NCBI GenBank assembly: GCA_964057225.1
Contig: OZ059894.1
Coordinates: 11,594,001 to 11,658,000 of the forward strand
Source of the DNA: Auanema rhodensis
Taxonomy: Eukaryota > Animalia > Nematoda
Reading direction: 5' to 3'
DNA length: 64,000 nt
The position numbers and the translations under genes were made by a program. This document shows, one piece after another, positions 10,781-63,686 of the stretch. The notes under the pieces are model-generated. The model was not told the origin of the DNA. It did not search any database and saw only the letters and a list, made by a program, of their open reading frames with translations. The first letter of the stretch is position 1; every line of letters begins with the position of its first letter.

Positions 10781-10866
10781 TGTCGCGATAAGCGAGTAGG
10801 TTTTGTTTTTGTTATCTCTATCTCTCTCTCTATATATATATACCTCTCTCTATCTCTATCTCTCTA

Positions 10867-10911
<45 letters not shown>

Positions 10912-11174: not shown

Positions 11175-11177
11175 AAT

Positions 11178-11189
11178 TGGTGCATCGGC
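11178..11189 (+). promoter_or_regulatory. Primer binding site, probably tRNA-Gly
   Basis: TGGTGCATCGGC 3 nt after the LTR; complementary to a tRNA-Gly-type 3' end (...CGAUGCACCA). Confidence 0.75.
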
Positions 11190-11451
11190 TAGTTTAGATC
11201 TTAGCCGCTTTAAGTCCCGCGTGGCAGGTGAGATACAGCTCAAACCAAGCGTGTTTGAGCAAAAAACATACTTAATAGAAATCGTGGCAACCATTAGTCC
11301 ACGTCAAGTCACACCAAAAAGACTTGAACCATAAGCAAACTCTGCAGACAGAAACAGAGATTCACTATCACATATACTGTGATCACCAAACAAACAAAAA
11401 AAAAGAGAAAGTAAAAGGAATATAAGCATTATTCCTACATCTACGACAAAA

Positions 11452-17400: not shown

Positions 17401-19383
17401 ACTTCGACATATGCCGAAGAAATCAATAGTTGCAAGGACTCTAACATGTTCACCACAAAACTTATAGCGAATCCTCATTGCTCCCCAGAAATGGCAACAT
17501 GGACAGTGATAATAACCATTATGGCCGTTACCCTCATAGTCTCTTGTCTATGCCGCATGGGTTACAGCCAATATAGATATAAGACATGGTCCAGAAACAC
17601 TCAAATTATGCTCAACACCATGAAATCAAAACACAAAACAATCTCCGTACAAGAAGATCATGAAACTGATCAAAAAATAACAGAAAATCACAATGATACG
17701 TTGCAATTAAAACAAACGAACACACAAGACGTTAATATTGTGGATCATGAAACCTCTCAAAAGCATATTTACCCTATTTTAAACCATACAAGAAGGCCAC
17801 CAAAATTCTCTCTTTTTACTAGAGGGTCGCAATCATCTTTACCATCGTTACTGGCAATCATCTTGGCTTTCTGTATTGGAAGCTGCAGCTCTTGCTCCGA
17901 TGTCCATGTTCAACATTTCGTTAACATAAGATGCGATGAAAACCTAGTCTGTTATCACGAATACAGTCAAGATATAATATTCTCTCCCGGAACAAAACAG
18001 TTATGTATCAACATAATACACTCTAATCATGAAATCGGTCAATTCAAAATAACGAAATTATATACTGAACATGTCTGCCGAAAGAATATTAGATACTTCA
18101 CTAGACAGACAACAGTTAACATACTGAGTATATTACGATGCCGTCACCGAGGCTCCTGTAACGGAACATGTGAAACTAACTCGCTTTATAATAAAATCAA
18201 AGAACTACAACCATACACCTTTCCTTCACAATCCGGTTGTTTTACATCGTCGGCGAGATTTTACACATGTCCTATGATTTGGACAGATCCATGTCTTTTC
18301 TACAAAATAGAGCATATACCCATCACAGAAGAAGTATACGAAGTCTATACTTGTGATAGTTGGTTCACCCAAACTGTATTCAATATAGAAACAACACTAC
18401 TCCAGCAGAAAAACAATTACAATATCACTCTACAACCTTACACAAAAAATCGTGAACAACTTTTCAATATAACAACGTTATCACAATCACAACCTCCTCC
18501 AGAAATGTACACAAAATTATTTTTTTCCTCGAAAGAAAACACGTACATTACGGATATACATACAAAGGGAATAGTTCAATGTGCAACAGAGGAAGCCGCA
18601 TTAAAACATTTCAACAATTGTACAGTATCCTCATTTTGCCCATGCACATTTAACAGATTTGATGAAATAAAATGTAGGTGTGATACCCCTACTTTTGAAA
18701 AAATGTCCAATACATCAGACATGAGATCTCCTAACCGAAACTTCAAAACTAAAGATAACACGTTATCATTCTCTACAAATTTAGACGAAAGTTTTGTTAC
18801 GGTCGATTCATCTCTATTCTTAAACTCAGTCATTTTTTCCAACAATCTGCCTTGTGCACCTGCCCTCACAAAACTATCAGGTTGCTACTCCTGCGGGCAG
18901 GGTGCGTTCGCAGAGTTCCAATGCCTTACGGCAGAAGAAACATGGATTTCTATCGAATGTCAAAGAGAAGTATTTATGATAAAATGTTCTCCAAAAGTAG
19001 CAATCACGGAAGTAACAATCAAAAGAGAAAATTCTCAAATTGATGAATTCTGCTATACCACATGCGACAATAAAAAAATTGAGATCATTATTAAGGGAAC
19101 ATTACACCACATAGCAAGCATAGATGAAATAAACGAAAGTGACTCAAAAGAGGGTACAGAATCCAAATCCATTGACTTTGCTCCAATCTTCAAACTAATC
19201 CTATCAAAGTTGGGAATCATACTGATAGGCATTGTCATTACCGCTACTATAGGATATGTAGCATGCACGCCAATGATATACTTTGTATTGTTAAATACAG
19301 TATTAGCCATACAATGGATGGCCAAAAGGATGATTGCAATATACAGAAATTTCACAGCCTCACTTCGAGATCAGAGATTTTAA
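11452..19383 (+). CDS. Gag-Pol-Env polyprotein, 2643 aa
   Basis: LPTFDG Gag motif, three Cys/His knuckles, protease LIDEGS, RT DIKAAF and YVDN, RNase H FADAS, integrase HHCC with DLMGP/SDCAGNF/WERLVG, then hydrophobic segments and a Cys-rich Gc-like ectodomain (GCYSCGQGA) with C-terminal TM. Confidence 0.95.
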   Translation: MSLLFVNHIKQSNQFLGELLTRYEMEVKDLPGILVDCDFHTEEEEETLSCLIIRWTKVQHQFKESLKNHQDNEKKFQKFYEASDKTLRKALDEQYIAFTSDEDFEPNIKKVQNAIIELDEHIMKAERILRKLRKTLHKNESEHNSNRSTENNETENKSNDQFLEIIKSFLHIQQTSIQKPAMSLPTFDGKPENFKSFWGRFDRLVHDNEQFTTLEKVNLLCESLKGDSQIAIRGIEPSAQNYELMREALVSEFGDYSSDINSLLTQLRNLKFASNNAKACKETFGETKALIRQIEAAGATVSREMCTAMILNKFPYHIVEDILIHPNNYHSTKEMLTAVDHKIYSFFLKEQTRNSHEQKFRNHKDNVTSVSHKENSVEQRKTQTWPCVFCDSSEHRFYQCTTFETPEKRRYRIRGKAICWICFSDKHKSSECRKQKCRNCQGDHNSALCSQGRKSVQNIQKDKETPTIKKDQALLITTEELLNKKTTEYKQESDTNNRIPTEALNAPVSLNHIADTHNIEESQVILRTAMANIYNHNSKKYEQVRMLIDEGSMRSFISKDLSTRLGLPILGSQKRTFYGIGALSETHEVEDVKVIIGTSTGSLIVTKLFTKPMLTTPIRCPKLSNEDLKFIQRRKIKLANPKTNGESFTPDILIGMDRYKLFMHLNEETELPSRMRLKNSVFGHMIHGEAPLPDDNTQQEVILCSTLEEITKETSHKELLTNLFELDSIGINTENANADRTIDYYEEYSKDIKIENNRIIAPFPLKNNFKNLKNNKMPAYHRFVSLWRKLLHNPEMLSHYTTTIESYLKDNIVEQIPNNHQEPLEFYMPHHGVWKPSKANPLRIVFDASAKQKDSPSLNEIIHTGRSFITYIHDIMISCRTRPIIITCDIKAAFLQVQLTENHKNLCKFFWIKNKEYPISHNNIITLRFNRLPFGITASPSVLNMGIKWFLESKVDNPLAMEILHNLYVDNIILTANTTEEAIKKCKETQTLFSEINMHVREFLSNDEQVIQNLPEEDRYPNMTTKILGISFNKEHDSFIIPIKITTTHTSYTKRILLSQLHSIFDPIGLSAPILLPLKLILREIISTKLSWDQPIDSHSIKQWEQHITQINNKQLTMNRYFKFSEHETQLWVFADASNQAMAACSYFQTNGNISSLLNGKSRIAPKNKTTIPRLELLAIRLAVRMALSIVTICPKIAKVNIVSDSNIALSWIVSQKSLPLFINNQTNTIKKQLKQIEQICCNIELYHVQTSFNTADIGSRGADMEKLQVSDWIEGPHWLTKLSVHNPLTSLGSPNNSSRNNAELKSEHHNVVHIIIDNPPTHDIWNIRENYDDVIKTMTTVGKLFKKWFFTVHPNDANKLQKIKHLTSTDTHTVEDINIIEKILISNSQSNMSLDDLQQRHINLKFFKDTWDIYRVRSRLQNTLLPEETKNPIFLLKTNPIVKKLINKIHKDNNHQGKHFTLIQLRQKFYIPKITGVIKQTLKNCVTCKRFQSHPYELPDMPSLPKDRTILTRAFFSTGCDLMGPFTLRNGSKVHICLFTCMTTRAIHLEVVTNQSTVAFMNAFTRFISRRGTPEIMRSDCAGNFILSSKILETLEKTSDYNERSLLNTLAQQKIKWIYNTPLSPWKGGCWERLVGVTKASLKKCFIPSRMSLDDLHTAIVKIEAIINTRPLTHPHPDNLDTLPIRPIDFLTSAIKFSLPENNADTHIFDIHSDIQTIQSTEQALEALQLSEDSASKFWKRFQEEYLTCLKDIFKHKHHRKNHTNIFPQPDEIVLIQNDMLPRGTWKLGRIIETITSSDGNIRSAKVATSNGNIIIRSINQLYPLEIRCNTNSNKIIEDNSHIVQENNSSTDRTPHTDIVLDNILFDHPIEHTDQTIHENKDINDVSHNYDIAYESDNSQHDNTYTPETENNEDATNDRPQNKTKQSSVKTAKHTEQDDVTEKEIIKAFPLKMSYATHQRKNKINPKVAADIMKALSLPIIITSTYAEEINSCKDSNMFTTKLIANPHCSPEMATWTVIITIMAVTLIVSCLCRMGYSQYRYKTWSRNTQIMLNTMKSKHKTISVQEDHETDQKITENHNDTLQLKQTNTQDVNIVDHETSQKHIYPILNHTRRPPKFSLFTRGSQSSLPSLLAIILAFCIGSCSSCSDVHVQHFVNIRCDENLVCYHEYSQDIIFSPGTKQLCINIIHSNHEIGQFKITKLYTEHVCRKNIRYFTRQTTVNILSILRCRHRGSCNGTCETNSLYNKIKELQPYTFPSQSGCFTSSARFYTCPMIWTDPCLFYKIEHIPITEEVYEVYTCDSWFTQTVFNIETTLLQQKNNYNITLQPYTKNREQLFNITTLSQSQPPPEMYTKLFFSSKENTYITDIHTKGIVQCATEEAALKHFNNCTVSSFCPCTFNRFDEIKCRCDTPTFEKMSNTSDMRSPNRNFKTKDNTLSFSTNLDESFVTVDSSLFLNSVIFSNNLPCAPALTKLSGCYSCGQGAFAEFQCLTAEETWISIECQREVFMIKCSPKVAITEVTIKRENSQIDEFCYTTCDNKKIEIIIKGTLHHIASIDEINESDSKEGTESKSIDFAPIFKLILSKLGIILIGIVITATIGYVACTPMIYFVLLNTVLAIQWMAKRMIAIYRNFTASLRDQRF

Positions 19384-19698
19384 TAAAGAAGATATAAAAG
19401 GTAGAATAAACAAAAGCAAAGTATAAACTAAAATTCACATAAATAAAATAAACCAAGGAGAGAAGAGAAGGGATTAATTTCTGAAATAATAAAGTAACAC
19501 GAATCTGCTAGTTTTACTTAAGATATCTAATCTGTAGTATTGAATTACATAATAACTCGTTAACAGACGTTTAATGGATAATATCAAAAACAGAAGGATA
19601 TCATATTAATCTCTGAATGACGTAATAGACACATATCATAGACCAGACGTCAACCAGTATATAAGGTGGCAAAACAAGTTTGCCTCAACTCAGTAGTA

Positions 19699-20160
19699 AT
19701 GGAGGATATAACGTCTAACTTAGTTGAGAACACTTCCTTCGAGGAAGATCTCAAAAAGTATTCGCATCTACCCAATACTACTGCAAGCCTGAGACAGCTA
19801 ATGGTCCTTGAAAAAAGGTTCTATGACAACCTGGCCAGCGCTGTGAACCACCTATCCGAGAGGCTGGACAACATTAACCACTCTCTGAATTTGAAACTGG
19901 ACAACCTAGCCGTCCAAACCGCGCCTAAGGCCTCCTGCATCTTTTGCAGCAAACCGACCGCTGATGGTCACCGAACCGCAGCTTGCCCAATATATCCCTC
20001 GTCTCCAGAGCGGACTCTACGTCTACATGAATTGGGACTATGTATCAGATGCTTGAACCCGAAACATCCGGACACATGCGAGGTATCTTGTTATAGATGC
20101 AAAGCAGAGACCCACCATGGAGTTGTGTGTGGGGAGACCAAACGTAAAAGACCCATGTAG
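19699..20160 (+). CDS. Accessory 3' ORF or exon: predicted coiled-coil plus three Gag-like Cys/His knuckles
   Basis: CIFC..HRTAAC, CIRC..HPDTC, CYRC..HHGVVC; first ATG 19699, frame open from 19666. Confidence 0.75.
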   Translation: MEDITSNLVENTSFEEDLKKYSHLPNTTASLRQLMVLEKRFYDNLASAVNHLSERLDNINHSLNLKLDNLAVQTAPKASCIFCSKPTADGHRTAACPIYPSSPERTLRLHELGLCIRCLNPKHPDTCEVSCYRCKAETHHGVVCGETKRKRPM

Positions 20161-20182
20161 GTCTTTACACTCTTGCCGGGAG

Positions 20183-20268
20183 TGTCGCGATAAGCGAGTA
20201 GGTTTTGTTTTTGTTATCTCTATCTCTCTCTCTATATATATATACCTCTCTCTATCTCTATCTCTCTA

Positions 20269-20319
<51 letters not shown>

Positions 20320-20582
20320 ATCTATCTCTATCTCTCTTTATCTCCTTCCTTTGTAATTAGATCAAAACACATATGCATAACATATGTGTTAACATGTGGC
20401 ATAAGTAACAGTTTATTTCAGACGACCGCCCAACAACGGAGGACAGTCTTACATTTTTTAACGTTCGCAGTCAGTGATTCTATTCCGTGCTTGTCTTGTT
20501 AATTCATCAATAAACCCTTTTCTACATATTCGCTTTGTGTTTTATTTCCAACCATACTATACACTTGCGGTATAACGCCACA
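20183..20582 (+). repeat. 3' LTR (400 bp)
   Basis: Matches the 5' LTR apart from 6 extra nt in (CT)n. Confidence 0.96.
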
Positions 20583-23007: not shown

Positions 23008-25649
23008 GGGTGGCGGACGTTTCGTCGTCTCTAGTTTGTGAACTAGTTCAGGCTGATCATTAGAGGGCAAACTTTATGATAATGTGCTGACAACTGTCAG
23101 TGTTCATGTAACTCGGGGTGCTATTAAAGCTATAAATCTATAGAAGTCAGATATAAGTGGCTACATACCTTGAAGTGCCATCAAAATATAAATTGAAAAA
23201 AGCAGAAATTAAAATAAACATACAGTTCTATCAACCAGGCTATCATCAAACAGTTTCAAGTCAACAGTTACGTGAGTTCATAGTAATAGTTGTTAGTTTA
23301 TCTTTTCTTTCGATAAGTTTGCTTATTCACACTTTCTCATCTTTTCTCGTTCATCATGATTTTTCCTTCTACTTTCTGTCCATTTTCTCTGATGATTAAC
23401 GCTCAGGGTAAATTTGTTCTTGTTTCTCAGCCTTTTGATAATGTTCCTTCGGAGAACATAACTATCTTTTTTAATAATTCTTCGGTAAATACTCAGAATC
23501 TTGAAGTTTATTCAAATGATGTAACTTCACTCTCATTTTTGAATTTCACTCTTCCATCTTTTAATATCCCTCCATTGAGGCAGCAAAATGTTAATTTTGC
23601 TTCTGCTCTTTCTCTAGTTAATTCATCTGCGGCATCTTCTTCAGTTGAATCTGTTGCTACAGTTACTGTTCCTACTGTCAACAGCGTTCCACTGTTCTCT
23701 TCTTCTACTTCACATCTTTCTATTCAGCCTTCTTCTTCTTCTTCTGCCGTTCATTCTTCACCGTCATCTTCTCTTTCTTCTTCTCCTCCTTCTGTTTCCT
23801 CTCCTTCTTTACCTGTTCTCTCTCCTTCTTCTTCTGTTCCCTCTCCTTCTTCTTCTGTTCCCTCTCCTTCTTCTTCTGTTCCCTCTCCTTCTTCTTCATT
23901 TTCTTTGCAATCTGCAAATCCTAACTCATACGCCGCTCTCATTGCGCCTTCTAAGCAGGGTGTACACCCCTGTTTAGAATATAAATTTGAAAACTTGCTG
24001 TATCGCTACCAATTCAGTAGTAAAAGTTCTCAAAAAGCTTATTCTATTTATCGTTGCACAGGTTGTAAACATTTGGGTAAATACACTTCTATCAAAGTAG
24101 AAAATAATGTATTTCTCGAAAATCCTGTTGCTCAAAACCATCATTGTGATCCATTTTTGTTTTCTATTAACAAATGCAAAAATATCACATACTCTCTAAC
24201 TCAGAATATTAAAAGTTCAGACTCATGTTTTGAGATGAAAGCATATTCCTTATTTGTCAATGAAATAAAAAAAATATTTCATGAATCTGAGTTAGAAGAG
24301 CATGAAAAGCAAGAAGTTTCCTCTGCTTGGTTTCATGGTGGCTATGACAGTAGACGTAGAGCTATTACAAGGGCTTTAAGTTCTCGTAAAGACTTAAGAA
24401 CATCCATGACCAATGTTCCTCTGTCTCTGTCTAAAACTATCAATGGTCGTACGTTCTTGCATTTTCATGACAGCGAGTTTCATTTGTATTTCGATACATT
24501 TTGTTTGGAACTAGCTGTTCAGAATGGTTTAACTCATTTGCTTGGGGACGGTTGTTTCAAATACCAGCCTTTGGATATGGAACAAACATATACCATCATG
24601 GGCGGTTGCAGAAATGGAACAACTGTACCTCTTTTCTATTCCATTTTAAAAAATAAGAGTAGGTTCACTTATAGAAGGCTTCTTCAACATATTGCACTAG
24701 CTCTCTCCAACGTTGGTTGCATAGTTGAAAACCTTATTTTTATCTGTGATTTTGAGATCGCTGTAATAAGGGAAGCTGAAACTATTTTTAATTCTGTTCA
24801 AGGATGTGCATTTCATTATGCTCAGAGCTTGAACAGACGGTTTCTTCAACTGGGTTTGACACAAGCAGAGAAGCAATCCATTGAAATCAAACAATGGCAT
24901 GGTCGGCTGCTGGGCTTGCTCTTCCTTCAAACTGATCTTATCTCACGGTCCGGGTTACTCAATTCTCCTGTTTCTTCTGATCATCCATCATATTCTTCTT
25001 GTCTTCAAATGATCAGTTATGTGAATGAAACATGGATTGAAGGACCTTTGCGACATTATTGGAGCAAATGGGACATAAAACAGTTTCGTACATCTAATAA
25101 TGTTGAATCTTTTCACCGTAAAATGAAGACTATTTTATCTTGCTCTCATCCTCCTCTTTCTGAATTAATTACTTTTTTTCATGGTGAAAATTTGATGGCT
25201 AATCATGTCCTGATCGCTTTGTCATCGAATGTTGAGCCTGCCAGGAAAAAAAGAAAAAACGTAATTGAGAGGCAACAACGGATTGAGGTTTAGTTTGAAA
25301 ACTTTAGGAGCATCTCCAATAACCGACTGCCTAATCAGCAAGAAATAATAGCATATGTCGAGGAGATGGCGAAGTTTAACACCAGAAAATCTTATTTTTG
25401 AATCATTTAACTTGAAAAACTAAACTCTAATAAATTTTTTGAATCATATCTTTTTTTTCTAACACAAAAACCTCCTTGCCGTTTAGATTGAAAACCTCGA
25501 TTTTTTATGAACTGTTTAAGTTTTTGGGTAATTTTTAGAAGTCTAAACGACCAAAAACTGAGAGTACAACACGTGTGGTATAATTTACGACCGTTAGGCT
25601 TGCTGGGGAGAGGTTGTAAAAATAGGAGACGACGAAACGTCTCAGACCC
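23008..25649 (+). mobile_element. Mutator-like (MULE) DNA transposon
   Basis: 9-bp TSD GGACGGGAT (22999-23007, 25650-25658); 24-bp imperfect TIRs GGGTnnnnGACGTTTCGTCGTCTC (20/24); transposase ORF. Confidence 0.93.
23356..25293 (+). CDS. MULE DDE transposase (start uncertain, stop possibly premature)
   Basis: GDGCFK, ICDFE, GCAFH (CxxH) and TSNNVESFH motifs; Cys/His region YRCTGC..HHC; Ser/Pro-rich N-terminal repeats. Confidence 0.88.
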   Translation: MIFPSTFCPFSLMINAQGKFVLVSQPFDNVPSENITIFFNNSSVNTQNLEVYSNDVTSLSFLNFTLPSFNIPPLRQQNVNFASALSLVNSSAASSSVESVATVTVPTVNSVPLFSSSTSHLSIQPSSSSSAVHSSPSSSLSSSPPSVSSPSLPVLSPSSSVPSPSSSVPSPSSSVPSPSSSFSLQSANPNSYAALIAPSKQGVHPCLEYKFENLLYRYQFSSKSSQKAYSIYRCTGCKHLGKYTSIKVENNVFLENPVAQNHHCDPFLFSINKCKNITYSLTQNIKSSDSCFEMKAYSLFVNEIKKIFHESELEEHEKQEVSSAWFHGGYDSRRRAITRALSSRKDLRTSMTNVPLSLSKTINGRTFLHFHDSEFHLYFDTFCLELAVQNGLTHLLGDGCFKYQPLDMEQTYTIMGGCRNGTTVPLFYSILKNKSRFTYRRLLQHIALALSNVGCIVENLIFICDFEIAVIREAETIFNSVQGCAFHYAQSLNRRFLQLGLTQAEKQSIEIKQWHGRLLGLLFLQTDLISRSGLLNSPVSSDHPSYSSCLQMISYVNETWIEGPLRHYWSKWDIKQFRTSNNVESFHRKMKTILSCSHPPLSELITFFHGENLMANHVLIALSSNVEPARKKRKNVIERQQRIEV

Positions 25650-34608: not shown

Positions 34609-35787
34609 ACAGTAAAAAGTCCAATCAAGAGAGAAATTTTTTCAACACATAGTTGTTTTTTTTTTAAATATCATTGTTTTTCCTCATAACTCGGTTTAAA
34701 CTCGTTCTAACCCGTTGAAATACGTCTAGAAAGTCTTTATAACATGCATATGTATGATAGAACTTCATATTTATTGTAATAGAAAATTTTATTTTCAGAC
34801 GTCTTGGTTAACAATGATATGTTTTACCCCCTTATAATTTTTATCATAATGTTCCTTATACGGAACGCTCAATGAAACTTGCTTCCAGAAAAATTTCTTT
34901 CTATTTTTTCTTCATATGTACGTAGATACTATAGAGAACTATGATAGAAAACTTTAACATTCACGAAATCATCATTTCTCATTACGCTACGGAGGTTTAA
35001 AAAGCTGTGTTTTACCTTATAATAGACCGGAAAACCCTTGTGTTAAAACTGGACCGTTTTTACACATATAAAAATGTCCCGTATTCGGGACCCTAATGTA
35101 ACTTTTGATTCCCTATATTTTTTTTCATGAAATTTACAATCTACTGTAGAAAGAAGAATTATTTTTATAAAAACTGTAAATTTTTGAAAAATGAAAACAA
35201 AACGAAAACAAAAACAACTTTTTTTTGAACATTTTCTCACACAAGGGTCCCCCCTTACCTACTTTTTTTCTCATTACTCGTTTCAACCTCATCCGATCAC
35301 TCTGCAAACATGTTTAATCGTTCTAACTTGTTGAAATACGTCTTAAAAGTCTAAACAACATGCATATGCATAATAGAAACCACCCGAATAGGCCCCCACG
35401 CACTAAACGAGATATATACATTACCAGTATAGTAATAGAACACATATTGAAGATTAATTCGATAAGAACAATTTATTGACGTAGAGAATGTTTGTTCCGA
35501 AAAACTACAATATTAAACTATAAAAGTAACAAAAGCGTAGAGGCAGCAAAGACATGAATAAACATAAATGTAAATACAGAATTACCAGGTAGTACATAAG
35601 TATGACAAAAAATTATAAGAAAGCCATGAAAATAGAAGGTTTGTGAACAAATGAGAGGTACATCTTTGATCGTATAGTCATTTCTAAACCGTTCGTATGC
35701 TGCAGCATCGTCATAAGCGTCACTCAAGTTGAATTTCCATGTGTACTACACGATTTTCATTCTTATTGTTACATTCTTTCCCTGAGG

Positions 35788-35937
35788 GAATGGGCCGTTC
35801 CCGCCAGCAGTGCAAGAGCGGGTCGACCCGTGAGGTGGAGCTAGCAAGCCAGCATCTACCTCAAGTCTCAAAAATCGGTTAACCTTATTGTGAACCAATG
35901 GAACACATATCGAAGGTTAATTCGATAAGAACGATTA
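35788..35937 (-). pseudogene. U2: U2 3' part (nt 38-end) downstream of copy 3
   Basis: Same 3' junction as 27210. Confidence 0.92.
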
Positions 35938-38900
35938 ATGGTTTATTGAATAACTAATGTTATGATACAATAAATAACCAATAAAAAAGAGCCCAGAATC
36001 GGGGAGACGGTATTACCAGTACAACTTAAAACAGCAAGTAATTAAAAAGTACATAATAAGACACATTGCCAACAGAGGCTAAAACGACTCAAGAGTCGGG
36101 GGAGTGGGTTAAAAAAAATGAACAAAAAAATGAATATTAAAGCAGAACAATGAGAAATCAAGTGCCGCTATGATCAAACAATTTGAGTGCCTACGGCAAT
36201 GATGTTAAAAATAAACAACAAAATACATGTACCAATGAAGGTCAGAAAGAAAGAAACAAAAGACAAAAATAAGTAATACAAAAAGTAAATACATTACAAT
36301 CAAATCACAAACAAGTCAATTGATAATTTCTTCTTCATATTGCCTTACACCAGAAACATGTTCCACGTAGATATTCCTGGCCCACTTGATGGTATCGGCG
36401 ACGACGAGCTTCTCCATTAGCCGGTTGTAGTGGCTGCTGATCTTGAGTGATCGGAGGGCTTGTCCGTTGAGCGGGTCCATAGTTCCAAGCATTCCTACGA
36501 CATATGCTTCTACACTAGTCTTATAACCAAGACATTGGTATTGGCTGGCTATGTCAGCATATTTCCTCTCCTTTATCATACGCGCGGCTATCATGGCTTG
36601 ACGGCGGTTTTCATAGCTCACTGTAACATCAACGATACTACAGTGTTTTGCGTCATGATCGACCACTACTATGTCAGGTCGGAGTGTACTATTAATGTCA
36701 GGAAGAGGCTGGTTAGTGTAAACTTCTCCGTTTTTAGGCTCTGGCAGGGCTTTGATAAGACGGTCCACGATGTTGTTGTGGCGGAGTTGGATTGCTCTCG
36801 TGTGAGAGTGGCAGTGTCCAAGAACATGTGCAGCAGTTTCGTTGGAGTAACTACACCTGCGGCACTGTTTGTTTCCTTCTCCGTGTCTTCTACAGCCATT
36901 GAGCTGGAGAGTATTGAGTCGAGCCTTGTGGATGAATCGCCAATCAGCAAACCGTATGAAATCTCCCTTCGCCATAAAGTGATTGGACGCTTTGTTGAGC
37001 ATTGTGACATCAAAGACTTTCCCTTGATCCGGTTTTTGAAGAAGGATCCGAAGGTCTTTCAGCCATAATGCACGTCGCAGGCTTCTGTGGCATAGTGAAG
37101 GTGTTAACAGTTGGTTGTTTAGATTGAGTTCTAAACCACTTTCGAGGCATGTCCAGTTAGCGTTGATGAGTTTCTTGAGTTGACGCATCGCTACTCTTAC
37201 TCTAGTCCAGATGGAGGAAACATCAGATGTTTCGGTGTCGAAAATGCCATCAACGGAACCGTTGTAATATGCAGCTGTCTCATCGTTACTGGCTTGACGT
37301 TTAATCCTTTTTGATGCTACTTTTTTTGAGTCTTGATGCGCAATATCAGCTACTACAAGATCAGATGACTTCAAAAGTTGGTAGGCATGAGTGACTTCAC
37401 AGACGTCTGACAGGTGTTGGAGTCGAGAGAGACCAAGTCCGCCGTAGTTAGTTGGCAGGTAGATTGGTTCAGCACTGGCGTTTGGAGGATAGTGCATCCA
37501 TCTACGGGCACAGCGTTTGAGTTCTTTGTCAAAGGCGACTAGTTTACTCTTTGGGACGTGGCCATTCGTCATATGAAAATTAAGGCAGGGCATCAGGAAG
37601 GTGCGTACTGCGTCAGCTTTCTGCCATTCAGCAAGTAAGGATTTGTCAATTTTTTCCAAGTGTTGACTCATAATATTCACTGTTGGAACCGCAGACTTAT
37701 GTAAATGCATTCCAGTAGGGATTCCCAGGTGGGAGTAGCTGTCGAATTTGCTGAGAGCGGGTAGAGAGGAGCTCTGTAGCATGTATGAGGCTGTTGATAT
37801 TTTCCCTTTGTCGATCGTCAAGGTGGCGCATTTCGCTGGTTTGAAGGTCAAGCCTGTGAAATTAGCCGCATTTGATGCTGCGTCCAACATTTTCTGTAGA
37901 TCTTCTGATGATGAGGAGACCAGGGCAAGGTCATCGGCGTACGCTAGCACAGCGATGTTGTGGTTGTGTAGCTTATAGCCAGTAGAGGATTCCAAGATGG
38001 TTTTAATTAGAGGTTCAATGGCAAGGTTGAACAGGATCGGAGATAGTGGGGATCCTTGTAACACACCTGCATGAACTGGAATGGTCGATGTGAGTCCGGA
38101 GCCTGTCTGGATTCTTGTAGAGGCATCTGTGTATAGAGCTCGTACTCGGGATATTGAGGCTTCAGCCACTCCTGACCATCTTAGAACGTCTAGCAGAGTT
38201 TCGTGTGGCAGCGATCCAAAAGCGTTTGCGAGATCAAGCCAAGCAATTGCAATTTTCTCACGTTTACGTTTAGCGTCCGCAATGGTACTTTGCAACATAA
38301 AGTTGTGTTCCATGCATCCAGCTTTGGCCACAAAGCCCTTTTGGGAGGGAGAAAGTCTTTTTTCTGCTCTTGCCCATGTTAGCAGTCGATGCGTAAGACA
38401 AGCTGAGTACGTCTTACCAATTGTGCACGAAAGTGCTATTGGTCGCCAGTTGTTAATGTCAGCTTTATCACCTTTCTTATGGATGAGGACGGTGGTCGAC
38501 TCTTTCCAGGAAAAAGGGATGTGTCCTAGCTTGTGTACGGTGTTAAATATCGCTGCTAATATGTGACCTCCTTGGTCAAATTTCTTCCAGTGCGAGTATC
38601 GAAGTCCATCAGCTCCTGGAGCCGTATCGCTGCAACGTCGTATGCGTTCCCAGACTTCCAAAGGGGTGAAAACACCTTCTAATGGGTCGGTACTAGCTGG
38701 CAAATCCGGTCTGGTGACTGTGATGGGGAGGGCTGGGCCTTGACTGCTGTGAACAGAAAGGAAATGTTTTTCAACCTCTGCAGATGGTATGGTGCAGGTT
38801 TCACTTTGTTCTCCGAGCAGTTGTCGAAAGGCTTTCTTCTTGTTGGCCCTCCAGAGCTTCTGGAGCTTCATCGCCTGGGTTTTTTGGTCTTCCTCAGGTT

Positions 38901-39646
38901 GTGTGTGTGGTCGGCGCCTTTGTCGGAAGTTGGGAACTTTGATCATAATGTCAAGAGACTTTCTGATTGCGTCTACCAACTCTTCCAGGACCTGCTCGAG
39001 CTCACTTTTGCACACAACCTTTTTAATTCTATCCACCCAAGTATTTTCAGAGTTTCTATTCGGATCAGGGTCGGCAAAAAATGGTTCTGTACTCGAAACC
39101 CTGATCTCGTTGAATATTTCACTCTCTCGCGGAAGGGGGGAAACTTCGGCCTCTGGGGACAAGTCCAGAATTGGGGCCTCAAACAAGCGTACCGTTGATG
39201 GAGATCCTTGTTCCTGTCCACTGGATGATGTTTCCTCCATTGTACGCTCCTCCACGGGCGGGGTGGTCGTCCTTGTGCCTGGTGGGCGGGTGTTCCTGAT
39301 CCTCCGCAATATAGGGCGGGAACTGGGCTCTCTCGGAGATAGAGGTGAGATCACCACAGTTTCCTCTATGATGCGGAGGCATCCTTCAGCTTTTTTCTGA
39401 TGGCTTTTAACGGCCTTCAGATTGCTGGTGAGGCCACAGGCACGGCACTCAAATTCTACTCCGACCTCATGTTCTCTCCGAAGATGGCGGACGAGACCAT
39501 TGTGGTCTGAGTAGGATCGCGGAATAGGAGCGCAGATTGAACAAGAAAAAGGGCTCTGAAGAGGCACCTTTAGCTTGTAAAGCCCTTGCTCCATCTCTAG
39601 CAGATCTAAAGACTTACGTAGTACAGTTGCAATATCGATTTAGCCA
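35938..39646 (-). mobile_element. Utopia-like retrotransposon, copy 3 (3709 bp, full length)
   Basis: Same junctions and ORF as copy 2 with scattered substitutions. Confidence 0.94.
36316..39594 (-). CDS. Zn-finger / RT / RLE protein, 1092 aa
   Basis: Same motifs as 27590-30868; YADD intact. Confidence 0.96.
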   Translation of the reverse strand: MEQGLYKLKVPLQSPFSCSICAPIPRSYSDHNGLVRHLRREHEVGVEFECRACGLTSNLKAVKSHQKKAEGCLRIIEETVVISPLSPREPSSRPILRRIRNTRPPGTRTTTPPVEERTMEETSSSGQEQGSPSTVRLFEAPILDLSPEAEVSPLPRESEIFNEIRVSSTEPFFADPDPNRNSENTWVDRIKKVVCKSELEQVLEELVDAIRKSLDIMIKVPNFRQRRRPHTQPEEDQKTQAMKLQKLWRANKKKAFRQLLGEQSETCTIPSAEVEKHFLSVHSSQGPALPITVTRPDLPASTDPLEGVFTPLEVWERIRRCSDTAPGADGLRYSHWKKFDQGGHILAAIFNTVHKLGHIPFSWKESTTVLIHKKGDKADINNWRPIALSCTIGKTYSACLTHRLLTWARAEKRLSPSQKGFVAKAGCMEHNFMLQSTIADAKRKREKIAIAWLDLANAFGSLPHETLLDVLRWSGVAEASISRVRALYTDASTRIQTGSGLTSTIPVHAGVLQGSPLSPILFNLAIEPLIKTILESSTGYKLHNHNIAVLAYADDLALVSSSSEDLQKMLDAASNAANFTGLTFKPAKCATLTIDKGKISTASYMLQSSSLPALSKFDSYSHLGIPTGMHLHKSAVPTVNIMSQHLEKIDKSLLAEWQKADAVRTFLMPCLNFHMTNGHVPKSKLVAFDKELKRCARRWMHYPPNASAEPIYLPTNYGGLGLSRLQHLSDVCEVTHAYQLLKSSDLVVADIAHQDSKKVASKRIKRQASNDETAAYYNGSVDGIFDTETSDVSSIWTRVRVAMRQLKKLINANWTCLESGLELNLNNQLLTPSLCHRSLRRALWLKDLRILLQKPDQGKVFDVTMLNKASNHFMAKGDFIRFADWRFIHKARLNTLQLNGCRRHGEGNKQCRRCSYSNETAAHVLGHCHSHTRAIQLRHNNIVDRLIKALPEPKNGEVYTNQPLPDINSTLRPDIVVVDHDAKHCSIVDVTVSYENRRQAMIAARMIKERKYADIASQYQCLGYKTSVEAYVVGMLGTMDPLNGQALRSLKISSHYNRLMEKLVVADTIKWARNIYVEHVSGVRQYEEEIIN

Positions 39647-39704
39647 TTAACCTTATTGTGAACCAATGGAACACATATCGAAGGTTAATTCGATAAGAAC
39701 GATT

Positions 39705-42700
39705 TATTGAAGTAGGAAATGTTTTGCCCCGTAGGACTACAAGTAAATATTATCTAGCACAAGGCTATTAGAGAATGATAAGATACTACCTGCACTAAGT
39801 GCGTCGCATCGTAAAGGGAAAAAAAATTAAACAATGGGAGTTTAACAGCATGAAATTGAGAGAAAAGACATATCCGAGTGTGAATAAAATTACGGGTGAA
39901 CGGAACATGGAGTACGAGAGACATACAAAACGAGACTAAGTGAAAAGAAAAAGTCTTGTATCACGTTCATGAAGGTTCGACGGATCCGGTAAGAAGCTGC
40001 GGGTTCAGAAGGTCAGCTTTTATCTCGTAGTCGTGGCGCATCAGGAATTTGTGAAGCTTTCCGGCTTTGCAGACGGCTGTATTGGTCCTCGTAGGATGGT
40101 GGAAGATGTTGTCGCTTAGTGATGTTACACATAAAGATATGCAAAAATAGAACAATTCAAAGAAAAAGAGCACAATTAAAACGAGATTTGGAGAGAAGAG
40201 AAGTCTTATATCACTTTCGATGGTTCGGAAGCTCCAGTCTGCTGCTGCGGTTTAGGGGGTGCAACTGGCATGTCGGAGGCGTAGCACATCATAGGTCAAG
40301 CTTGCTGGACTCCCGGCTCGGCTGGTGGCTGTGAGTTTTCCTTGTGCTTGTTCTCGGTGGTGGTCCCTGGGCTGTCTCTTCACCAAAAATTACTATACTA
40401 ATTGCACATTTCATTTAAACGACCCATTTCAGAAGCTTTAAGAGGAAAAGCTACAATTAGCATAGGACCGCCTCAAGGCCTGGTGGATCATTCAATTTAG
40501 TTTCAATCGCCAAGTATAGCGGCCTGGGCCCTTGGGTCAATTCACTGAACCAGTGTAGTATCGATTGTTCAATGGAACACATATCGAAGGTTAATTCGAT
40601 AAGAACGATTTATTGAAGTAGGAAATGTTTTGCCCCGTAGGACTACAAGTAAATATTATCTAGCACAAGGCTATTAGAGAATGATAAGATACTACCTGCA
40701 CTAAGTGCGTCGCATCGTAAAGGGAAAAAAAATTAAACAATGGGAGTTTAACAGCATGAAATTGAGAGAAAAGACATATCCGAGTGTGAATAAAATTACG
40801 GGTGAACGGAACATGGAGTACGAGAGACATACAAAACGAGACTAAGTGAAAAGAAAAAGTCTTGTATCACGTTCATGAAGGTTCGACGGATCCGGTAAGA
40901 AGCTGCGGGTTCAGAAGGTCAGCTTTCATCTCGTAGTCGTGGCGCATCAGGAATTTGTGAAGCTTTCCGGCTTTGCAGACGGCTGTATTGGTCCTCGTAG
41001 GATGGTGGAAGATGTTGTCGCTTAGTGATGTTACACATAAAGATATGCAAAAATAGAACAATTCAAAGAAAAAGAGCACAATTAAAACGAGATTTGGAGA
41101 GAAGAGAAGTCTTATATCACTTTCGATGGTTCGGAAGCTCCAGTCTGCTGCTGCGGTTTAGGGGGTGCAACTGGCATGTCGGAGGCGTAGCACATCATAG
41201 GTCAAGCTTGCTGGACTCCCGGCTCGGCTGGTGGCTGTGAGTTTTCCTTGTGCTTGTTCTCGGTGGTGGTCCCTGGGCTGTCTCTTCACCAAAAATTACT
41301 ATACTAATTGCACATTTCATTTAAACGACCCATTTCAGAAGCTTTAAGAGGAAAAGCTACAATTAGCATAGGACCGCCTCAAGGCCTGGTGGATCATTCA
41401 ATTTAGTTTCAATCGCCAAGTATAGCGGCCTGGGCCCTTGGGTCAATTCACTGAACCAGTGTAGTATCGATTGTTCAATGGAACACATATCGAAGGTTAA
41501 TTCGATAAGAACGATTTATTGAAGTAGGAAATGTTTTGCCCCGTAGGACTACAAGTAAATATTATCTAGCACAAGGCTATTAGAGAATGATAAGATACTA
41601 CCTGCACTAAGTGCGTCGCATCGTAAAGGGAAAAAAAATTAAACAATGGGAGTTTAACAGCATGAAATTGAGAGAAAAGACATATCCGAGTGTGAATAAA
41701 ATTACGGGTGAACGGAACATGGAGTACGAGAGACATACAAAACGAGACTAAGTGAAAAGAAAAAGTCTTGTATCACGTTCATGAAGGTTCGACGGATCCG
41801 GTAAGAAGCTGCGGGTTCAGAAGGTCAGCTTTTATCTCGTAGTCGTGGCGCATCAGGAATTTGTGAAGCTTTCCGGCTTTGCAGACGGCTGTATTGGTCC
41901 TCGTAGGATGGTGGAAGATGTTGTCGCTTAGTGATGTTACACATAAAGATATGCAAAAATAGAACAATTCAAAGAAAAAGAGCACAATTAAAACGAGATT
42001 TGGAGAGAAGAGAAGTCTTATATCACTTTCGATGGTTCGGAAGCTCCAGTCTGCTGCTGCGGTTTAGGGGGTGCAACTGGCATGTCGGAGGCGTAGCACA
42101 TCATAGGTCAAGCTTGCTGGACTCCCGGCTCGGCTGGTGGCTGTGAGTTTTCCTTGTGCTTGTTCTCGGTGGTGGTCCCTGGGCTGTCTCTTCACCAAAA
42201 ATTACTATACTAATTGCACATTTCATTTAAACGACCCATTTCAGAAGCTTTAAGAGGAAAAGCTACAATTAGCATAGGACCGCCTCAAGGCCTGGTGGAT
42301 CATTCAATTTAGTTTCAATCGCCAAGTATAGCGGCCTGGGCCCTTGGGTCAATTCACTGAACCAGTGTAGTATCGATTGTTCAATGGAACACATATCGAA
42401 GGTTAATTCGATAAGAACGATTTATTGAAGTAGGAAATGTTTTGCCCCGTAGGACTACAAGTAAATATTATCTAGCACAAGGCTATTAGAGAATGATAAG
42501 ATACTACCTGCACTAAGTGCGTCGCATCGTAAAGGGAAAAAAAATTAAACAATGGGAGTTTAACAGCATGAAATTGAGAGAAAAGACATATCCGAGTGTG
42601 AATAAAATTACGGGTGAACGGAACATGGAGTACGAGAGACATACAAAACGAGACTAAGTGAAAAGAAAAAGTCTTGTATCACGTTCATGAAGGTTCGACG

Positions 42701-43287
42701 GATCCGGTAAGAAGCTGCGGGTTCAGAAGGTCAGCTTTCATCTCGTAGTCGTGGCGCATCAGGAATTTGTGAAGCTTTCCGGCTTTGCAGACGGCTGTAT
42801 TGGTCCTCGTAGGATGGTGGAAGATGTTGTCGCTTAGTGATGTTACACATAAAGATATGCAAAAATAGAACAATTCAAAGAAAAAGAGCACAATTAAAAC
42901 GAGATTTGGAGAGAAGAGAAGTCTTATATCACTTTCGATGGTTCGGAAGCTCCAGTCTGCTGCTGCGGTTTAGGGGGTGCAACTGGCATGTCGGAGGCGT
43001 AGCACATCATAGGTCAAGCTTGCTGGACTCCCGGCTCGGCTGGTGGCTGTGAGTTTTCCTTGTGCTTGTTCTCGGTGGTGGTCCCTGGGCTGTCTCTTCA
43101 CCAAAAATTACTATACTAATTGCACATTTCATTTAAACGACCCATTTCAGAAGCTTTAAGAGGAAAAGCTACAATTAGCATAGGACCGCCTCAAGGCCTG
43201 GTGGATCATTCAATTTAGTTTCAATCGCCAAGTATAGCGGCCTGGGCCCTTGGGTCAATTCACTGAACCAGTGTAGTATCGATTGTT
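39705..43287 (-). mobile_element. Four tandem 865-bp U2-inserted short elements (39705-40569, 40611-41475, 41517-42381, 42423-43287) separated by U2 nt 39-79; putative non-autonomous retroelement, type A
   Basis: 906-bp period; each 3' end abuts U2 nt 39, forming AATAAA; each 5' end follows U2 nt 79; no RT ORF. Confidence 0.85.
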
Positions 43288-43366
43288 CAATGGAACACAT
43301 ATCGAAGGTTAATTCGATAAGAACGATTACTACACTTTGATCTTAGCCAAAAGGCCGAGAAGCGAT
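43288..43366 (-). pseudogene. U2: U2 5' fragment (nt 1-79) fused to the type A element
   Basis: U2 sequence ends ...TTCCATTG then AACAATCG. Confidence 0.92.
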
Positions 43367-56557: not shown

Positions 56558-57908
56558 AATGTCATATTCTTCATTATCAGTTATATCACTCTAAATCTTG
56601 TTGTTAATAGATACGACCACAAAGAAAACAACAGGAACAGTAACAATAACAAAAAAAATTTTTTTTTCACCTATGTGTCTAAAGGTTAGCCATGTATCCG
56701 TTTATATATATATATATATATATATATCAACAGTAAAAAGTCCAATCAAGAGAGAAATTTTTTCAACACATAGTTGTTTTTTTTTTAAATATCATTGTTT
56801 TTCCTCATAACTCGGTTTAAACTCGTTCTAACCCGTTGAAATACGTCTAGAAAGTCTTTATAACATGCATATGTATGATAGAACTTCATATTTATTGTAA
56901 TAGAAAATTTTATTTTCAGACGTCTTGGTTAACAATGATATGTTTTACCCCCTTATAATTTTTATCATAATGTTCCTTATACGGAACGCTCAATGAAACT
57001 TGCTTCCAGAAAAATTTCTTTCTATTTTTTCTTCATATGTACGTAGATACTATAGAGAACTATGATAGAAAACTTTAACATTCACGAAATCATCATTTCT
57101 CATTACGCTACGGAGGTTTAAAAAGCTGTGTTTTACCTTATAATAGACCGGAAAACCCTTGTGTTAAAACTGGACCGTTTTTACACATATAAAAATGTCC
57201 CGTATTCGGGACCCTAATGTAACTTTTGATTCCCTATATTTTTTTTCATGAAATTTACAATCTACTGTAGAAAGAAGAATTATTTTTATAAAAACTGTAA
57301 ATTTTTGAAAAATGAAAACAAAACGAAAACAAAAACAACTTTTTTTTGAACATTTTCTCACACAAGGGTCCCCCCTTACCTACTTTTTTTCTCATTACTC
57401 GTTTCAACCTCATCCGATCACTCTGCAAACATGTTTAATCGTTCTAACTTGTTGAAATACGTCTTAAAAGTCTAAACAACATGCATATGCATAATAGAAA
57501 CCACCCGAATAGGCCCCCACGCACTAAACGAGATATATACATTACCAGTATAGTAATAGAACACATATTGAAGATTAATTCGATAAGAACAATTTATTGA
57601 CGTAGAGAATGTTTGTTCCGAAAAACTACAATATTAAACTATAAAAGTAACAAAAGCGTAGAGGCAGCAAAGACATGAATAAACATAAATGTAAATACAG
57701 AATTACCAGGTAGTACATAAGTATGACAAAAAATTATAAGAAAGCCATGAAAATAGAAGGTTTGTGAACAAATGAGAGGTACATCTTTGATCGTATAGTC
57801 ATTTCTAAACCGTTCGTATGCTGCAGCATCGTCATAAGCGTCACTCAAGTTGAATTTCCATGTGTACTACACGATTTTCATTCTTATTGTTACATTCTTT
57901 CCCTGAGG

Positions 57909-58057
57909 GAATGGGCCGTTCCCGCCAGCAGTGCAAGAGCGGGTCGACCCGTGAGGTGGAGCTAGCAAGCCAGCATCTACCTCAAGTCTCAAAAATCGGT
58001 TAACCTTATTGTGAACCAATGGAACACATATCGAAGGTTAATTCGATAAGAACGATT
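57909..58057 (-). pseudogene. U2: U2 3' part (nt 39-end) downstream of the type B element
   Basis: Junction ...CTTCAATA|AATCGTTCTT on minus. Confidence 0.92.
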
Positions 58058-58844
58058 TATTGAAGTAGATAATGTTTGTCCCGGAGGACTACAATATTAA
58101 AATAATTACTGAAGCCCGAAGGCAGCGAGAAATAGTAAGGATACTACCTGCACTGAGTGCGTCGTATCATAAAAAAAGAGATAGCTAATGGGCAAGTTGA
58201 AGAGCTTGAAATTAACAATGACGTCACTAGAAGTAAAGTTTTCTATCTGCAGCTGCGGGTAAAGAGGGTCAGCGTAAGCAGAATTCAATTCTACCAACAA
58301 TTAGTGGGAACATTGAGAGAACAGATGAAGGAGGAAATTGTAACTTCAAGTAAAATAGATTATATCTTCAGCTGCGGGTAAAGAGAGTCAGCTTTGTACA
58401 GATTACTAGTTTACATAAGAAGTGGTAACATTTCAAAAAAGGAGCACAACATAAAAAACGAGACTACGGACTATGAGGTAAATGTTATCATTGTCTGGAT
58501 CGATGATTCGGCATTTGATTGCAGCTGCGGATTGAGTGGATCAGCTTGCATGGCGTCCGCATTCGACATCAGGGAAAATGATGAGTTTCTTGAGGTCCGG
58601 CTCGGCGGGCTGTTATGTCCTATTCCCTGTTGATGGTGTTGTTGTCCTTGAGCTTGTTCTTCTTCCCAGAAAAAAAAAACTGTGAAGCTGAAGAGTCCTA
58701 TTAAACGTCTTTAAACGCAAGATTAATAAGAAGCTACTACAGCTAACACAGGACCGCCTCAAGGCCTGGTAGATCAACCAGTGTTGCTTCAATCACCAAG
58801 TATTGCGGCCTGGGCCCTTGGATCAATTCACAACACCAGTATAG
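58058..58844 (-). mobile_element. 787-bp U2-inserted short element; putative non-autonomous retroelement, type B
   Basis: Same junctions as type A (U2 nt 39-79 on both sides); shares 5' and 3' blocks with type A, middle diverged. Confidence 0.85.
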
Positions 58845-58923
58845 CAATGGAACACATATCGAAGGTTAATTCGATAAGAACGATTACTACACTTTGATCT
58901 TAGCCAAAAGGCCGAGAAGCGAT
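58845..58923 (-). pseudogene. U2: U2 5' fragment (nt 1-79) fused to the type B element
   Basis: ...TTCCATTG then CTATACTGG. Confidence 0.92.
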
Positions 58924-62507: not shown

Positions 62508-63686
62508 ACAGTAAAAAGTCCAATCAAGAGAGAAATTTTTTCAACACATAGTTGTTTTTTTTTTAAATATCATTGTTTTTCCTCATAACTCGGTTTAAAC
62601 TCGTTCTAACCCGTTGAAATACGTCTAGAAAGTCTTTATAACATGCATATGTATGATAGAACTTCATATTTATTGTAATAGAAAATTTTATTTTCAGACG
62701 TCTTGGTTAACAATGATATGTTTTACCCCCTTATAATTTTTATCATAATGTTCCTTATACGGAACGCTCAATGAAACTTGCTTCCAGAAAAATTTCTTTC
62801 TATTTTTTCTTCATATGTACGTAGATACTATAGAGAACTATGATAGAAAACTTTAACATTCACGAAATCATCATTTCTCATTACGCTACGGAGGTTTAAA
62901 AAGCTGTGTTTTACCTTATAATAGACCGGAAAACCCTTGTGTTAAAACTGGACCGTTTTTACACATATAAAAATGTCCCGTATTCGGGACCCTAATGTAA
63001 CTTTTGATTCCCTATATTTTTTTTCATGAAATTTACAATCTACTGTAGAAAGAAGAATTATTTTTATAAAAACTGTAAATTTTTGAAAAATGAAAACAAA
63101 ACGAAAACAAAAACAACTTTTTTTTGAACATTTTCTCACACAAGGGTCCCCCCTTACCTACTTTTTTTCTCATTACTCGTTTCAACCTCATCCGATCACT
63201 CTGCAAACATGTTTAATCGTTCTAACTTGTTGAAATACGTCTTAAAAGTCTAAACAACATGCATATGCATAATAGAAACCACCCGAATAGGCCCCCACGC
63301 ACTAAACGAGATATATACATTACCAGTATAGTAATAGAACACATATTGAAGATTAATTCGATAAGAACAATTTATTGACGTAGAGAATGTTTGTTCCGAA
63401 AAACTACAATATTAAACTATAAAAGTAACAAAAGCGTAGAGGCAGCAAAGACATGAATAAACATAAATGTAAATACAGAATTACCAGGTAGTACATAAGT
63501 ATGACAAAAAATTATAAGAAAGCCATGAAAATAGAAGGTTTGTGAACAAATGAGAGGTACATCTTTGATCGTATAGTCATTTCTAAACCGTTCGTATGCT
63601 GCAGCATCGTCATAAGCGTCACTCAAGTTGAATTTCCATGTGTACTACACGATTTTCATTCTTATTGTTACATTCTTTCCCTGAGG

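Follow-up and report, generated by a model that had tools for sequence, protein, structure and literature searches.

Utopia elements are retrotransposons that lack long terminal repeats (LTRs; non-LTR elements) and insert into the genes for U2 small nuclear RNA (snRNA), with the downstream U2 sequence beginning at nucleotide (nt) 39; the known members encode a protein with reverse transcriptase (RT) and restriction-like endonuclease (RLE) domains, nematodes are among the hosts, tandem insertions occur in Nasonia, and no non-autonomous derivatives are described in the Utopia paper (PMC4640811). Drosophila is known to have short, non-coding and non-autonomous elements that accompany a site-specific non-LTR element in a tandem array of RNA genes: the R2 SIDEs and R2/R1 hybrid SIDEs, which use their partner's insertion site, keep only the 5′ and 3′ terminal functions and are co-transcribed with the host gene (PMC3414825). 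Here we analyse a 64,000-nt stretch of DNA from the nematode Auanema rhodensis (OZ059894.1, contig C1, positions 11,594,001–11,658,000; hereafter ‘the window’) and describe four types of short element, A to D, that are inserted at U2 nt 39 in the same orientation as Utopia. A–D are most likely undescribed; the initial annotation of this DNA was aware of no account of such elements, and our full-text search of the literature likewise returned no published description of non-autonomous Utopia or RLE elements in snRNA genes, with Repbase and Dfam lying outside its coverage.

The way in which A–D appear to work is close to that of SIDEs, with which they share the small size, the lack of coding capacity, the use of the partner's insertion site in a tandem RNA-gene array, the retention of terminal functions only and, as we argue below, a probable co-transcription with the host gene. 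They appear to differ in origin, however: SIDEs are internal deletions whose ends can still be recognised as those of R2 or R1, the R2 ribozyme among them, while A–D share only ~20 terminal nt with the resident Utopia-type element and, judged by this comparison, do not look like deletion derivatives. The target differs as well, being 28S ribosomal DNA (rDNA) in the case of SIDEs and, in the case of A–D, an snRNA gene transcribed by RNA polymerase II (Pol II), of which a 41-nt target-derived leader is kept. Unlike the members of Utopia, A–D encode nothing, and while Utopia insertions are flanked by no target-site duplication (TSD) in arthropods and by one of 20 bp in reptiles (PMC4640811), the duplicated U2 sequence amounts here to 41 nt for A–D and to 58 nt for the resident RT-encoding element. 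The R2 elements whose ribozyme cuts upstream in the 28S sequence resemble the elements studied here in having uniform 5′ junctions when full-length and variable ones when truncated (PMC3774820), but the retained target segment here lies downstream of the nick (nt 39–79 or 39–96), and thus the target sequence is duplicated and the site regenerated.

More distant parallels can be drawn with three other systems. NARTc of Trypanosoma cruzi is, like A–D, a non-autonomous partner that shares a short functional end (in NARTc the 5′ end) with the coding element, L1Tc, but is a truncated L1Tc, is dispersed and carries the Pr77 promoter/ribozyme (PMC3383444). None of these features was found in A–D. The SINEU elements, reportedly described by Kojima in 2015, are said to be dispersed, non-autonomous crocodilian short interspersed elements (SINEs) whose heads derive from U1 or U2 and whose mobility is attributed to Tx1-type long interspersed elements (LINEs); A–D, in contrast, occur in U2 genes only, and what forms their U2 ‘head’ is the very gene that they interrupt. 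The ‘SINE-like’ label that the initial annotation had given to type A applies in a loose sense only, and A–D are not SINEs: Rfam found no tRNA, 7SL or 5S head with an RNA polymerase III promoter in the A and B regions, and the copies are not dispersed. Their 3′ terminus is shared with the RT element, as a SINE tail is with that of a partner LINE. Finally, the Dada DNA transposons, which also target small-RNA genes, produce TSDs of 6–7 bp (PMC8869645); such a transposon was rejected as an explanation, the flanking repeat here being 41 nt of U2 and the 3′ boundary being the junction at which the RT element is joined to its target by target-primed reverse transcription (TPRT).

A tandem of type A elements at the Utopia site

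The window is a section of a tandem array with a unit of 2477 bp, each unit carrying a single 190-nt U2 snRNA gene along with a pair of 5S rRNA genes; the minus strand encodes all three. U2 was placed by Rfam, with the canonical copy at window positions 4656–4845 (minus strand), and the array, which we call the 1.2-Mb array, runs from ~10.9 to 12.3 Mb on C1 of the 181-Mb assembly. A large HSP70 exon of this assembly has its best similarity to Auanema (88%) and Caenorhabditis (81%), placing the host among the rhabditid nematodes. Mapping the canonical unit onto the window returned six insertions. Unless stated otherwise, coordinates below are window positions, and all U2 segments and elements at U2 sites lie on the minus strand.

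Four copies of type A, each of 865 bp, form a tandem with a period of 906 bp at 39705–43287; the boundaries drawn by the initial annotation agree with ours to the base, and all four copies are on the U2-sense strand. Read in the direction of U2 transcription, the tandem is preceded by U2 nt 1–79 (43288–43366), which is 100% identical to canonical U2, constitutes the head of the interrupted gene and is presumed to be the leader of the element RNA. Then follow copy 4 (42423–43287), copy 3 (41517–42381), copy 2 (40611–41475) and copy 1 (39705–40569; the reference copy for our searches), separated from one another by 41-nt segments of U2 (nt 39–79) at 42382–42422, 41476–41516 and 40570–40610, respectively. 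Copy 1 abuts U2 nt 39–96 (39647–39704), which is what remains of the head belonging to an RT element downstream, type A having been added into this head. This resident Utopia-type element of 3710 bp (35937–39646), presumably the source of RT and endonuclease, is followed in turn by U2 nt 39–190 (35785–35936), the 3′ part of the interrupted gene. The sibling type B (787 bp, 58058–58844) occupies the same U2 site elsewhere in the window, with U2 nt 1–79 on one side (58845–58923) and U2 nt 39–190 on the other (57906–58057).

Every type A copy ends with CTTCAATA and continues with AATCG (U2 nt 39–43), and it is this joining that makes an AATAAA span the element/U2 junction; as annotated initially, the completed AATAAA and the preceding U2 sequence up to nt 79 are present in every copy. 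The longest open reading frames (ORFs) of type A encode 68 and 71 aa and have no Pfam match, tblastn with the RT protein returned no match, and hence no RT or RLE coding was found. The tandem likewise contains no terminal inverted repeats (TIRs) and no LTRs, the sole flanking direct repeat being the 41-nt U2 segment, so that in all these respects the earlier description holds. It holds only in part for the claim of four insertions at U2 nt 38/39. While the site is exact in all four copies, these differ from each other at one position, offset 316, which reads T, C, T, C in array order (T in copies 1 and 3, C in copies 2 and 4). This alternation is better explained by a block-duplicated dimer than by four separate insertions, that is, the four-copy tandem is most simply a two-copy block that was duplicated.

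All copies in the genome share one site and one orientation

We mapped the array by counting exact patterns in the whole 181-Mb assembly. Uninterrupted U2 (nt 32–52) was found 399 times and the segment U2 nt 39–64 was found 547 times, in 148 cases without U2 nt 32–38 directly upstream, a figure that measures the colonisation of this essential 1.2-Mb gene array. The upstream neighbour could not be assigned to a class for 33 of the 547 segments; of three that we viewed, one was a diverged fossil and two were inversion breakpoints.

The flanks of type A copies led us to the sibling types B, C (742 bp) and D (783 bp). Altogether, A–D have 47 copies, with U2 nt 79 joined to the start of A in 12 cases and to the start of B, C or D in 35. 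A 20-mer from the module that these types share at their 5′ end has 47 matches, all in the array and all on one strand, and A–D copies outside the U2-5S array were not found. The 5′ junction is at U2 nt 79 in 47/47 copies, and wherever the 3′ end of a copy is intact, it is joined to U2 nt 39. This tabulation of flanks, which the initial annotation had named as a test of its proposal, thus places all 47 copies at the U2 site, and one site and one orientation in 47/47 copies cannot be due to chance. A–D form a family without coding capacity whose copies are found only where Utopia inserts in U2 genes.

The initial annotation had also suggested a search for an autonomous element carrying the 3′ end of A–D. 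TTCAATA joined to U2 nt 39 occurs 44 times: short elements account for 42 of these junctions, a truncated copy of the RT element for another, and the last lies at an assembly gap, with no such autonomous element among them; three type C junctions fall outside this count, as C ends with GTCAATA.

The types differ in how their copies are distributed. Type A has nine separate loci, with eight full copies outside the window dispersed over units at 10.91–11.98 Mb and all on the U2 strand; its copies are mostly single, spread over 1.07 Mb and located beside spacers of differing microsatellite length. Type B includes a run of 20 copies in consecutive units with a two-unit periodicity, and type D is represented by three copies in the assembly. 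Mixed stacks of the forms RT-A-B, C-RT, RT-D-RT and A4-RT were also seen. Over the 700 nt that lie upstream of U2, the units hardly differ from one another, and flank haplotypes therefore do not separate insertion from unit duplication.

Each unit of the array holds a fixed fossil, which is located ~265 nt past the 3′ end of U2. It consists of ~47 nt resembling the tail of B and C (85–89% identity) followed by U2 nt 39–78 (90%), is found at 6782–6865 and at the same offset at, for example, 4305–4364, 9259–9318 and 63333–63392, and has a more diverged version near the edge of the array (locus L046).

The resident RT element fits Utopia

The RT element contains one long ORF (36316–39594, minus strand) encoding a protein of 1092 aa, in which Pfam locates RVT_1 at residues 371–593. 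By eye, we recognise C2H2-like fingers at the N-terminus and, at the C-terminus, the motif CRRC..H....C followed by RPD...D.T....K..KY, corresponding to a CCHC motif and a PD..D/ExK-like endonuclease. The homologs are RLE-type elements of nematodes and arachnids annotated as R2. Judged by its domain plan and its site at U2 nt 39, the 3710-bp element appears to be a member of Utopia. Its closest protein relative (55% identity, on the soil metagenome contig L043) has GC-rich untranslated regions (UTRs), with no U2 flank and no likeness to the modules of A–D.

The element is abundant, with 68 3′ junctions (AACCATT joined to U2 nt 39) and 47 5′ junctions at U2 nt 96, the latter found in all full-length copies. 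At least 42 copies of the ORF were scored; they are 98–100% identical, almost all open and all in the array, and the family encoding this 1092-aa protein is the only RT-encoding one found there. About 20 further copies are truncated at the 5′ end, and in the eleven that we read (C1:10.96–12.10 Mb; loci L031 and L033–L042) the 5′ junction varies: it lies at U2 nt 38 (two copies), nt 87 or nt 160, at 40 or 148 nt beyond the U2 3′ end, or in distant spacer, or else U2 nt 1–38 are lost. Such truncated copies with variable 5′ junctions are the signature of R2-type TPRT. Three of the truncated copies (L038–L040) are identical, which points to unit duplication, and one older truncated copy ends with TTCAATA at nt 39, as A–D do, without the AACCATT of full-length copies.

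A–D share a terminus with the RT element and have uniform 5′ junctions

Types A to D have the insertion point and the orientation of the RT element. In addition, A, B and D finish with ~20 nt that match the RT element's own terminus (AACATTA..TA.TTCAATA), with a score that none of 20,000 shuffles reaches; for the terminal 20 nt of C, 12 of 20,000 shuffles do. Apart from this ~20-nt terminus and an 8-nt leader motif, comparison of A–D with the RT element by blastn (word size 7) and tblastn returned nothing significant, which agrees with the initial annotation and indicates that A–D did not simply arise from that element by internal deletion, an origin that we rejected for want of similarity in DNA or protein.

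The leaders themselves show some resemblance to U2: the first 11 nt of A (AACAATCGATA, 40559–40569) resemble U2 nt 56–68 (TAACCTTCGATAT), as does the leader of the RT element (TAAATCGATAT, 39612–39646). Both leaders may hold older U2-derived pieces. The motif is followed by CTACAC / TACTAC, complementary to U2 nt 31–39 just upstream of the insertion point.

The 5′ junctions lie at U2 nt 79 in all A–D copies and at nt 96 in all full-length RT copies, and they vary in truncated RT copies; RT copies located upstream of A or D stacks keep their nt-96 leader. A staggered cut at a fixed distance does not fit this pattern, as it would predict one distance for all elements, and such a cut inside a stack would not be expected to leave the upstream RT copies with their nt-96 junction. 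In R2 lineages that retain target sequence on their RNA, this sequence anneals to the target and primes second-strand synthesis, yielding uniform 5′ junctions (PMC3774820). Taken together with this pattern, the uniform junctions of full-length and the variable junctions of truncated copies lead us to infer that the template RNA is a chimera with a U2 leader, and this, in turn, supports co-transcription of the element with U2. Each insertion leaves behind an intact head of nt 1–79 (or 1–96) together with a fresh target, which explains the mixed stacks.

Conserved modules at both ends

Common to A–D are a ~108-nt module at the 5′ end (83–97% identity) and a ~110-nt module at the 3′ end (77–94%). 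In copy 1 of type A, the 5′ module (A nt 12–119) lies at 40451–40558 and the 3′ module at 39705–39816, where hairpins are followed by AAACATT..CTACTTCAATA. Just upstream of the 3′ module is a run of eight T on the sense strand (39819–39826), and each of A–D has retained 7 to 11 consecutive T at the corresponding position. The interiors, by contrast, are 57–72% identical, as compared to 53–60% for shuffled sequences. Conserved ends combined with interiors that are nearly random require selection on the ends, and this conservation would fit, as expected, a role of the ends in propagation.

The hairpins of the 3′ module are conserved, with only structure-preserving single changes among the types. 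For the 5′ module, we propose a helix of 9 bp (alignment columns 59–67/110–118) that is knotted with an invariant one; two of its changes are compensatory, two more are one-sided, and it contains a single mismatch. The helix was found by eye, and RNAalifold gave a nested fold without compensatory pairs. We consider this covarying, knotted helix as suggestive only.

No known RNA family was recognised: searched against Rfam with E values up to 10, the A and B regions returned only U2 fragments, and no ribozyme or other RNA family. Scanning the U2 leader and the leaders of A, B, D and the RT element with our own descriptor for a hepatitis delta virus (HDV)-like fold yielded no candidate that is conserved between types, and matches were not above those in shuffles, a negative result that does not preclude a ribozyme.

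A and D are well represented in RNA-like sequencing runs

Type A is present in sequencing runs of four studies with three organism labels. In three small runs of one study (X10–X12), contigs cover ~800 nt of A at a depth of 8–12; their coverage begins with the earliest 31-mer to bridge U2 nt 79 and the start of A, and words across the U2(50–79)-A junction are present. A type D contig (624–702 nt; window 40459–40490) reaches a depth of 62–98 in the same runs, seven to eight times that of type A, though D has only three copies. The RT element is represented by small pieces only (depth ~3), and the spacer at 35000–35377 has a depth of 0 despite its highest copy number. In a DNA run the order is reversed, with 1300–2000 for the spacer, ~320 for the RT element and 70 for A, and by this opposite order runs X10–X12 behave as RNA. 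The better representation of A and D as compared to the RT element in these runs is supporting, not decisive, evidence that A and D are expressed. Contigs from the RNA-like runs also reach 225–295 nt past the U2 3′ end (35490–35925), which suggests read-through transcription downstream of U2 genes.

Proposed mechanism and alternative explanations

We consider it probable that A–D are non-coding, non-autonomous, U2-specific non-LTR retroelements that are mobilised in trans by a Utopia-type protein; the steps that we infer are that the U2 promoter drives transcription, that the Utopia protein recognises the element and that homology primes the joining of the 5′ end. An inserted copy, having no promoter of its own, would be transcribed together with the first 79 nt of the interrupted U2 gene. 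The Utopia-type RT/endonuclease would nick a further U2 gene on its bottom strand, between nt 38 and 39, bind the 3′ end of the element RNA (the hairpins and the shared ~20 nt ending with TTCAATA) and copy it by TPRT. At its end, the cDNA would carry a copied U2 leader, which could then anneal to the target U2 and prime second-strand synthesis, yielding the constant nt-79 junction. The nt 1–79 head with an intact target site would stay upstream, so that further elements could stack, and unequal crossing-over in the array would multiply some of the copies.

A number of observations weigh against this interpretation. Proteins of the R2 type are selective for their own 3′ UTR, and the 3′ hairpins of A–D have no counterpart in the 3′ UTR of the RT element. 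Among the 47 copies there is no 5′ truncation, no variation of the junctions and no A-tail, in contrast to the plentiful truncation and variation seen in the RT element; uniform junctions are equally expected from duplication at the DNA level, and crossing-over in the 41-nt U2 repeat is another way in which mixed stacks can form. The covariation in the 5′ module relies on four sequences that effectively represent two lineages, and 39 of 500 shuffles reach it. As to expression, the RNA nature of X10–X12 is an automated guess, the contigs show neither strand nor ends, and those of type A stop 95–130 nt short of the 3′ end of the element. Lastly, the T/C alternation in the tandem, and the twenty type B copies in consecutive units both point to duplicated blocks, and part of the A–D copy number is certainly due to such array dynamics.

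The same observations are what one would expect if A–D were passive passengers of the array, stemming from one or more ancient insertions or from the relic of an extinct autonomous element and spread and homogenised by unequal crossing-over and gene conversion with no ongoing retrotransposition: junctions uniform in 47/47 copies, no truncated A–D, the T/C alternation, the run of 20 B-bearing units with its two-unit periodicity. The fossil with its B-like tail and U2 nt 39–78, fixed in every unit by array dynamics, further indicates that such inserts can become fixed without further mobility. We nevertheless regard this explanation as unlikely. Neutral divergence would not hold the ends at 77–97% identity while the interiors become near random; most type A copies are solitary, and they lie dispersed over 1.07 Mb beside spacers that differ in microsatellite length; the final 20 nt follow those of the RT element; and A–D exceed the RT element in the RNA-like runs. 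Mobilisation in trans could, alternatively, depend on a partner other than the resident element. This partner would belong to a second Utopia lineage or be of the Keno/Tx1 type, would carry the end modules of A–D and a leader up to nt 79, and would be absent from the assembly or have gone unrecognised. The 5′ and 3′ modules of A–D have indeed no counterpart in the resident element, the leader lengths differ (nt 79 versus nt 96), and the 33 of 547 U2(39–64) segments with an unclassified upstream neighbour, of which three were inspected, could accommodate it. However, those three turned out to be the diverged fossil and the two inversion breakpoints, all 44 of the TTCAATA junctions at nt 39 are accounted for, all 47 of the 5′ modules sit in elements of 742–865 bp, and the sole RT-encoding family found in the array is that of the 1092-aa protein, making such a partner very unlikely.

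We give the lowest probability of all to A–D being a family of structured non-coding RNA genes driven by the U2 promoter and acting, for example, on the Utopia protein or on U2 biogenesis as a decoy or regulator, copied with the array and not selected for mobility. This would be in keeping with the conserved and structured terminal RNA modules, with the high representation in RNA-like runs, above all of type D, and with the complementarity of the leader to U2 nt 31–37, but a 3′ boundary and terminus that coincide with the TPRT junction of the RT element are the product of insertion and needless for the function of a gene, and the interiors are free to vary. Returning to mobilisation by a Utopia-type protein, we put forward, tentatively and as a possibility that we do not favour, that A–D represent an independent class of promoter-less structured-RNA retroelements, which would borrow the Pol II snRNA promoter by means of their U2 nt 1–79 leader, join their 5′ end by homology priming with this leader, which would rebuild the target site and permit stacking without limit, and recruit the Utopia protein via their own hairpins and a 20-nt mimic of the Utopia terminus. 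Were A–D such a class, the knotted 5′ domain would be a new processing or protein-recruiting RNA.

Other features of the array and the assembly

Part of the array (C1:11.22–11.30 Mb) is inverted, with 14 U2 sites and 7 RT junctions on the plus strand and zero A–D copies; at both inversion breakpoints an inverted RT fragment (RT 2003 to 998) is fused to U2 nt 34. The window also contains insertions outside of U2. One of them, 9.8 kb long and located in the 5S portion of a unit (10781–20582), has terminal direct repeats of ~400 bp and one ORF of 2643 aa with Pao/BEL peptidase, RT, integrase and phlebovirus-G2-like envelope domains, and by these domains it is classified as a BEL/Pao-type endogenous retrovirus-like element. 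A second, 2.6-kb insertion in the 5S region (23010–25648) has a 645-aa ORF with a weak match to the MULE transposase (26.2 bits, as compared to the Pfam cut-off of 27.6) and is probably a Mutator-like DNA transposon. Elsewhere in the assembly, at C5:15,313,560–15,329,144, five near-identical HSP70 genes lie in tandem, one of them in the opposite orientation.

Significance

Types A to D would be the first non-autonomous partners reported for the ancient Utopia lineage and the first reported for an snRNA-gene target. Site-specific RLE retrotransposons, that is, R2 and its relatives, are under study as programmable gene-insertion tools, and which features of an RNA are sufficient to make it a template is a central question in this work. 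Here, four small RNAs have apparently been copied into one exact site while sharing ~20 nt with the coding element, and their 5′ and 3′ modules are directly testable. The contrast between uniform junctions, at nt 79 and nt 96, and the variable junctions of truncated copies constitutes a natural test of whether target sequence carried by the RNA directs 5′ joining.

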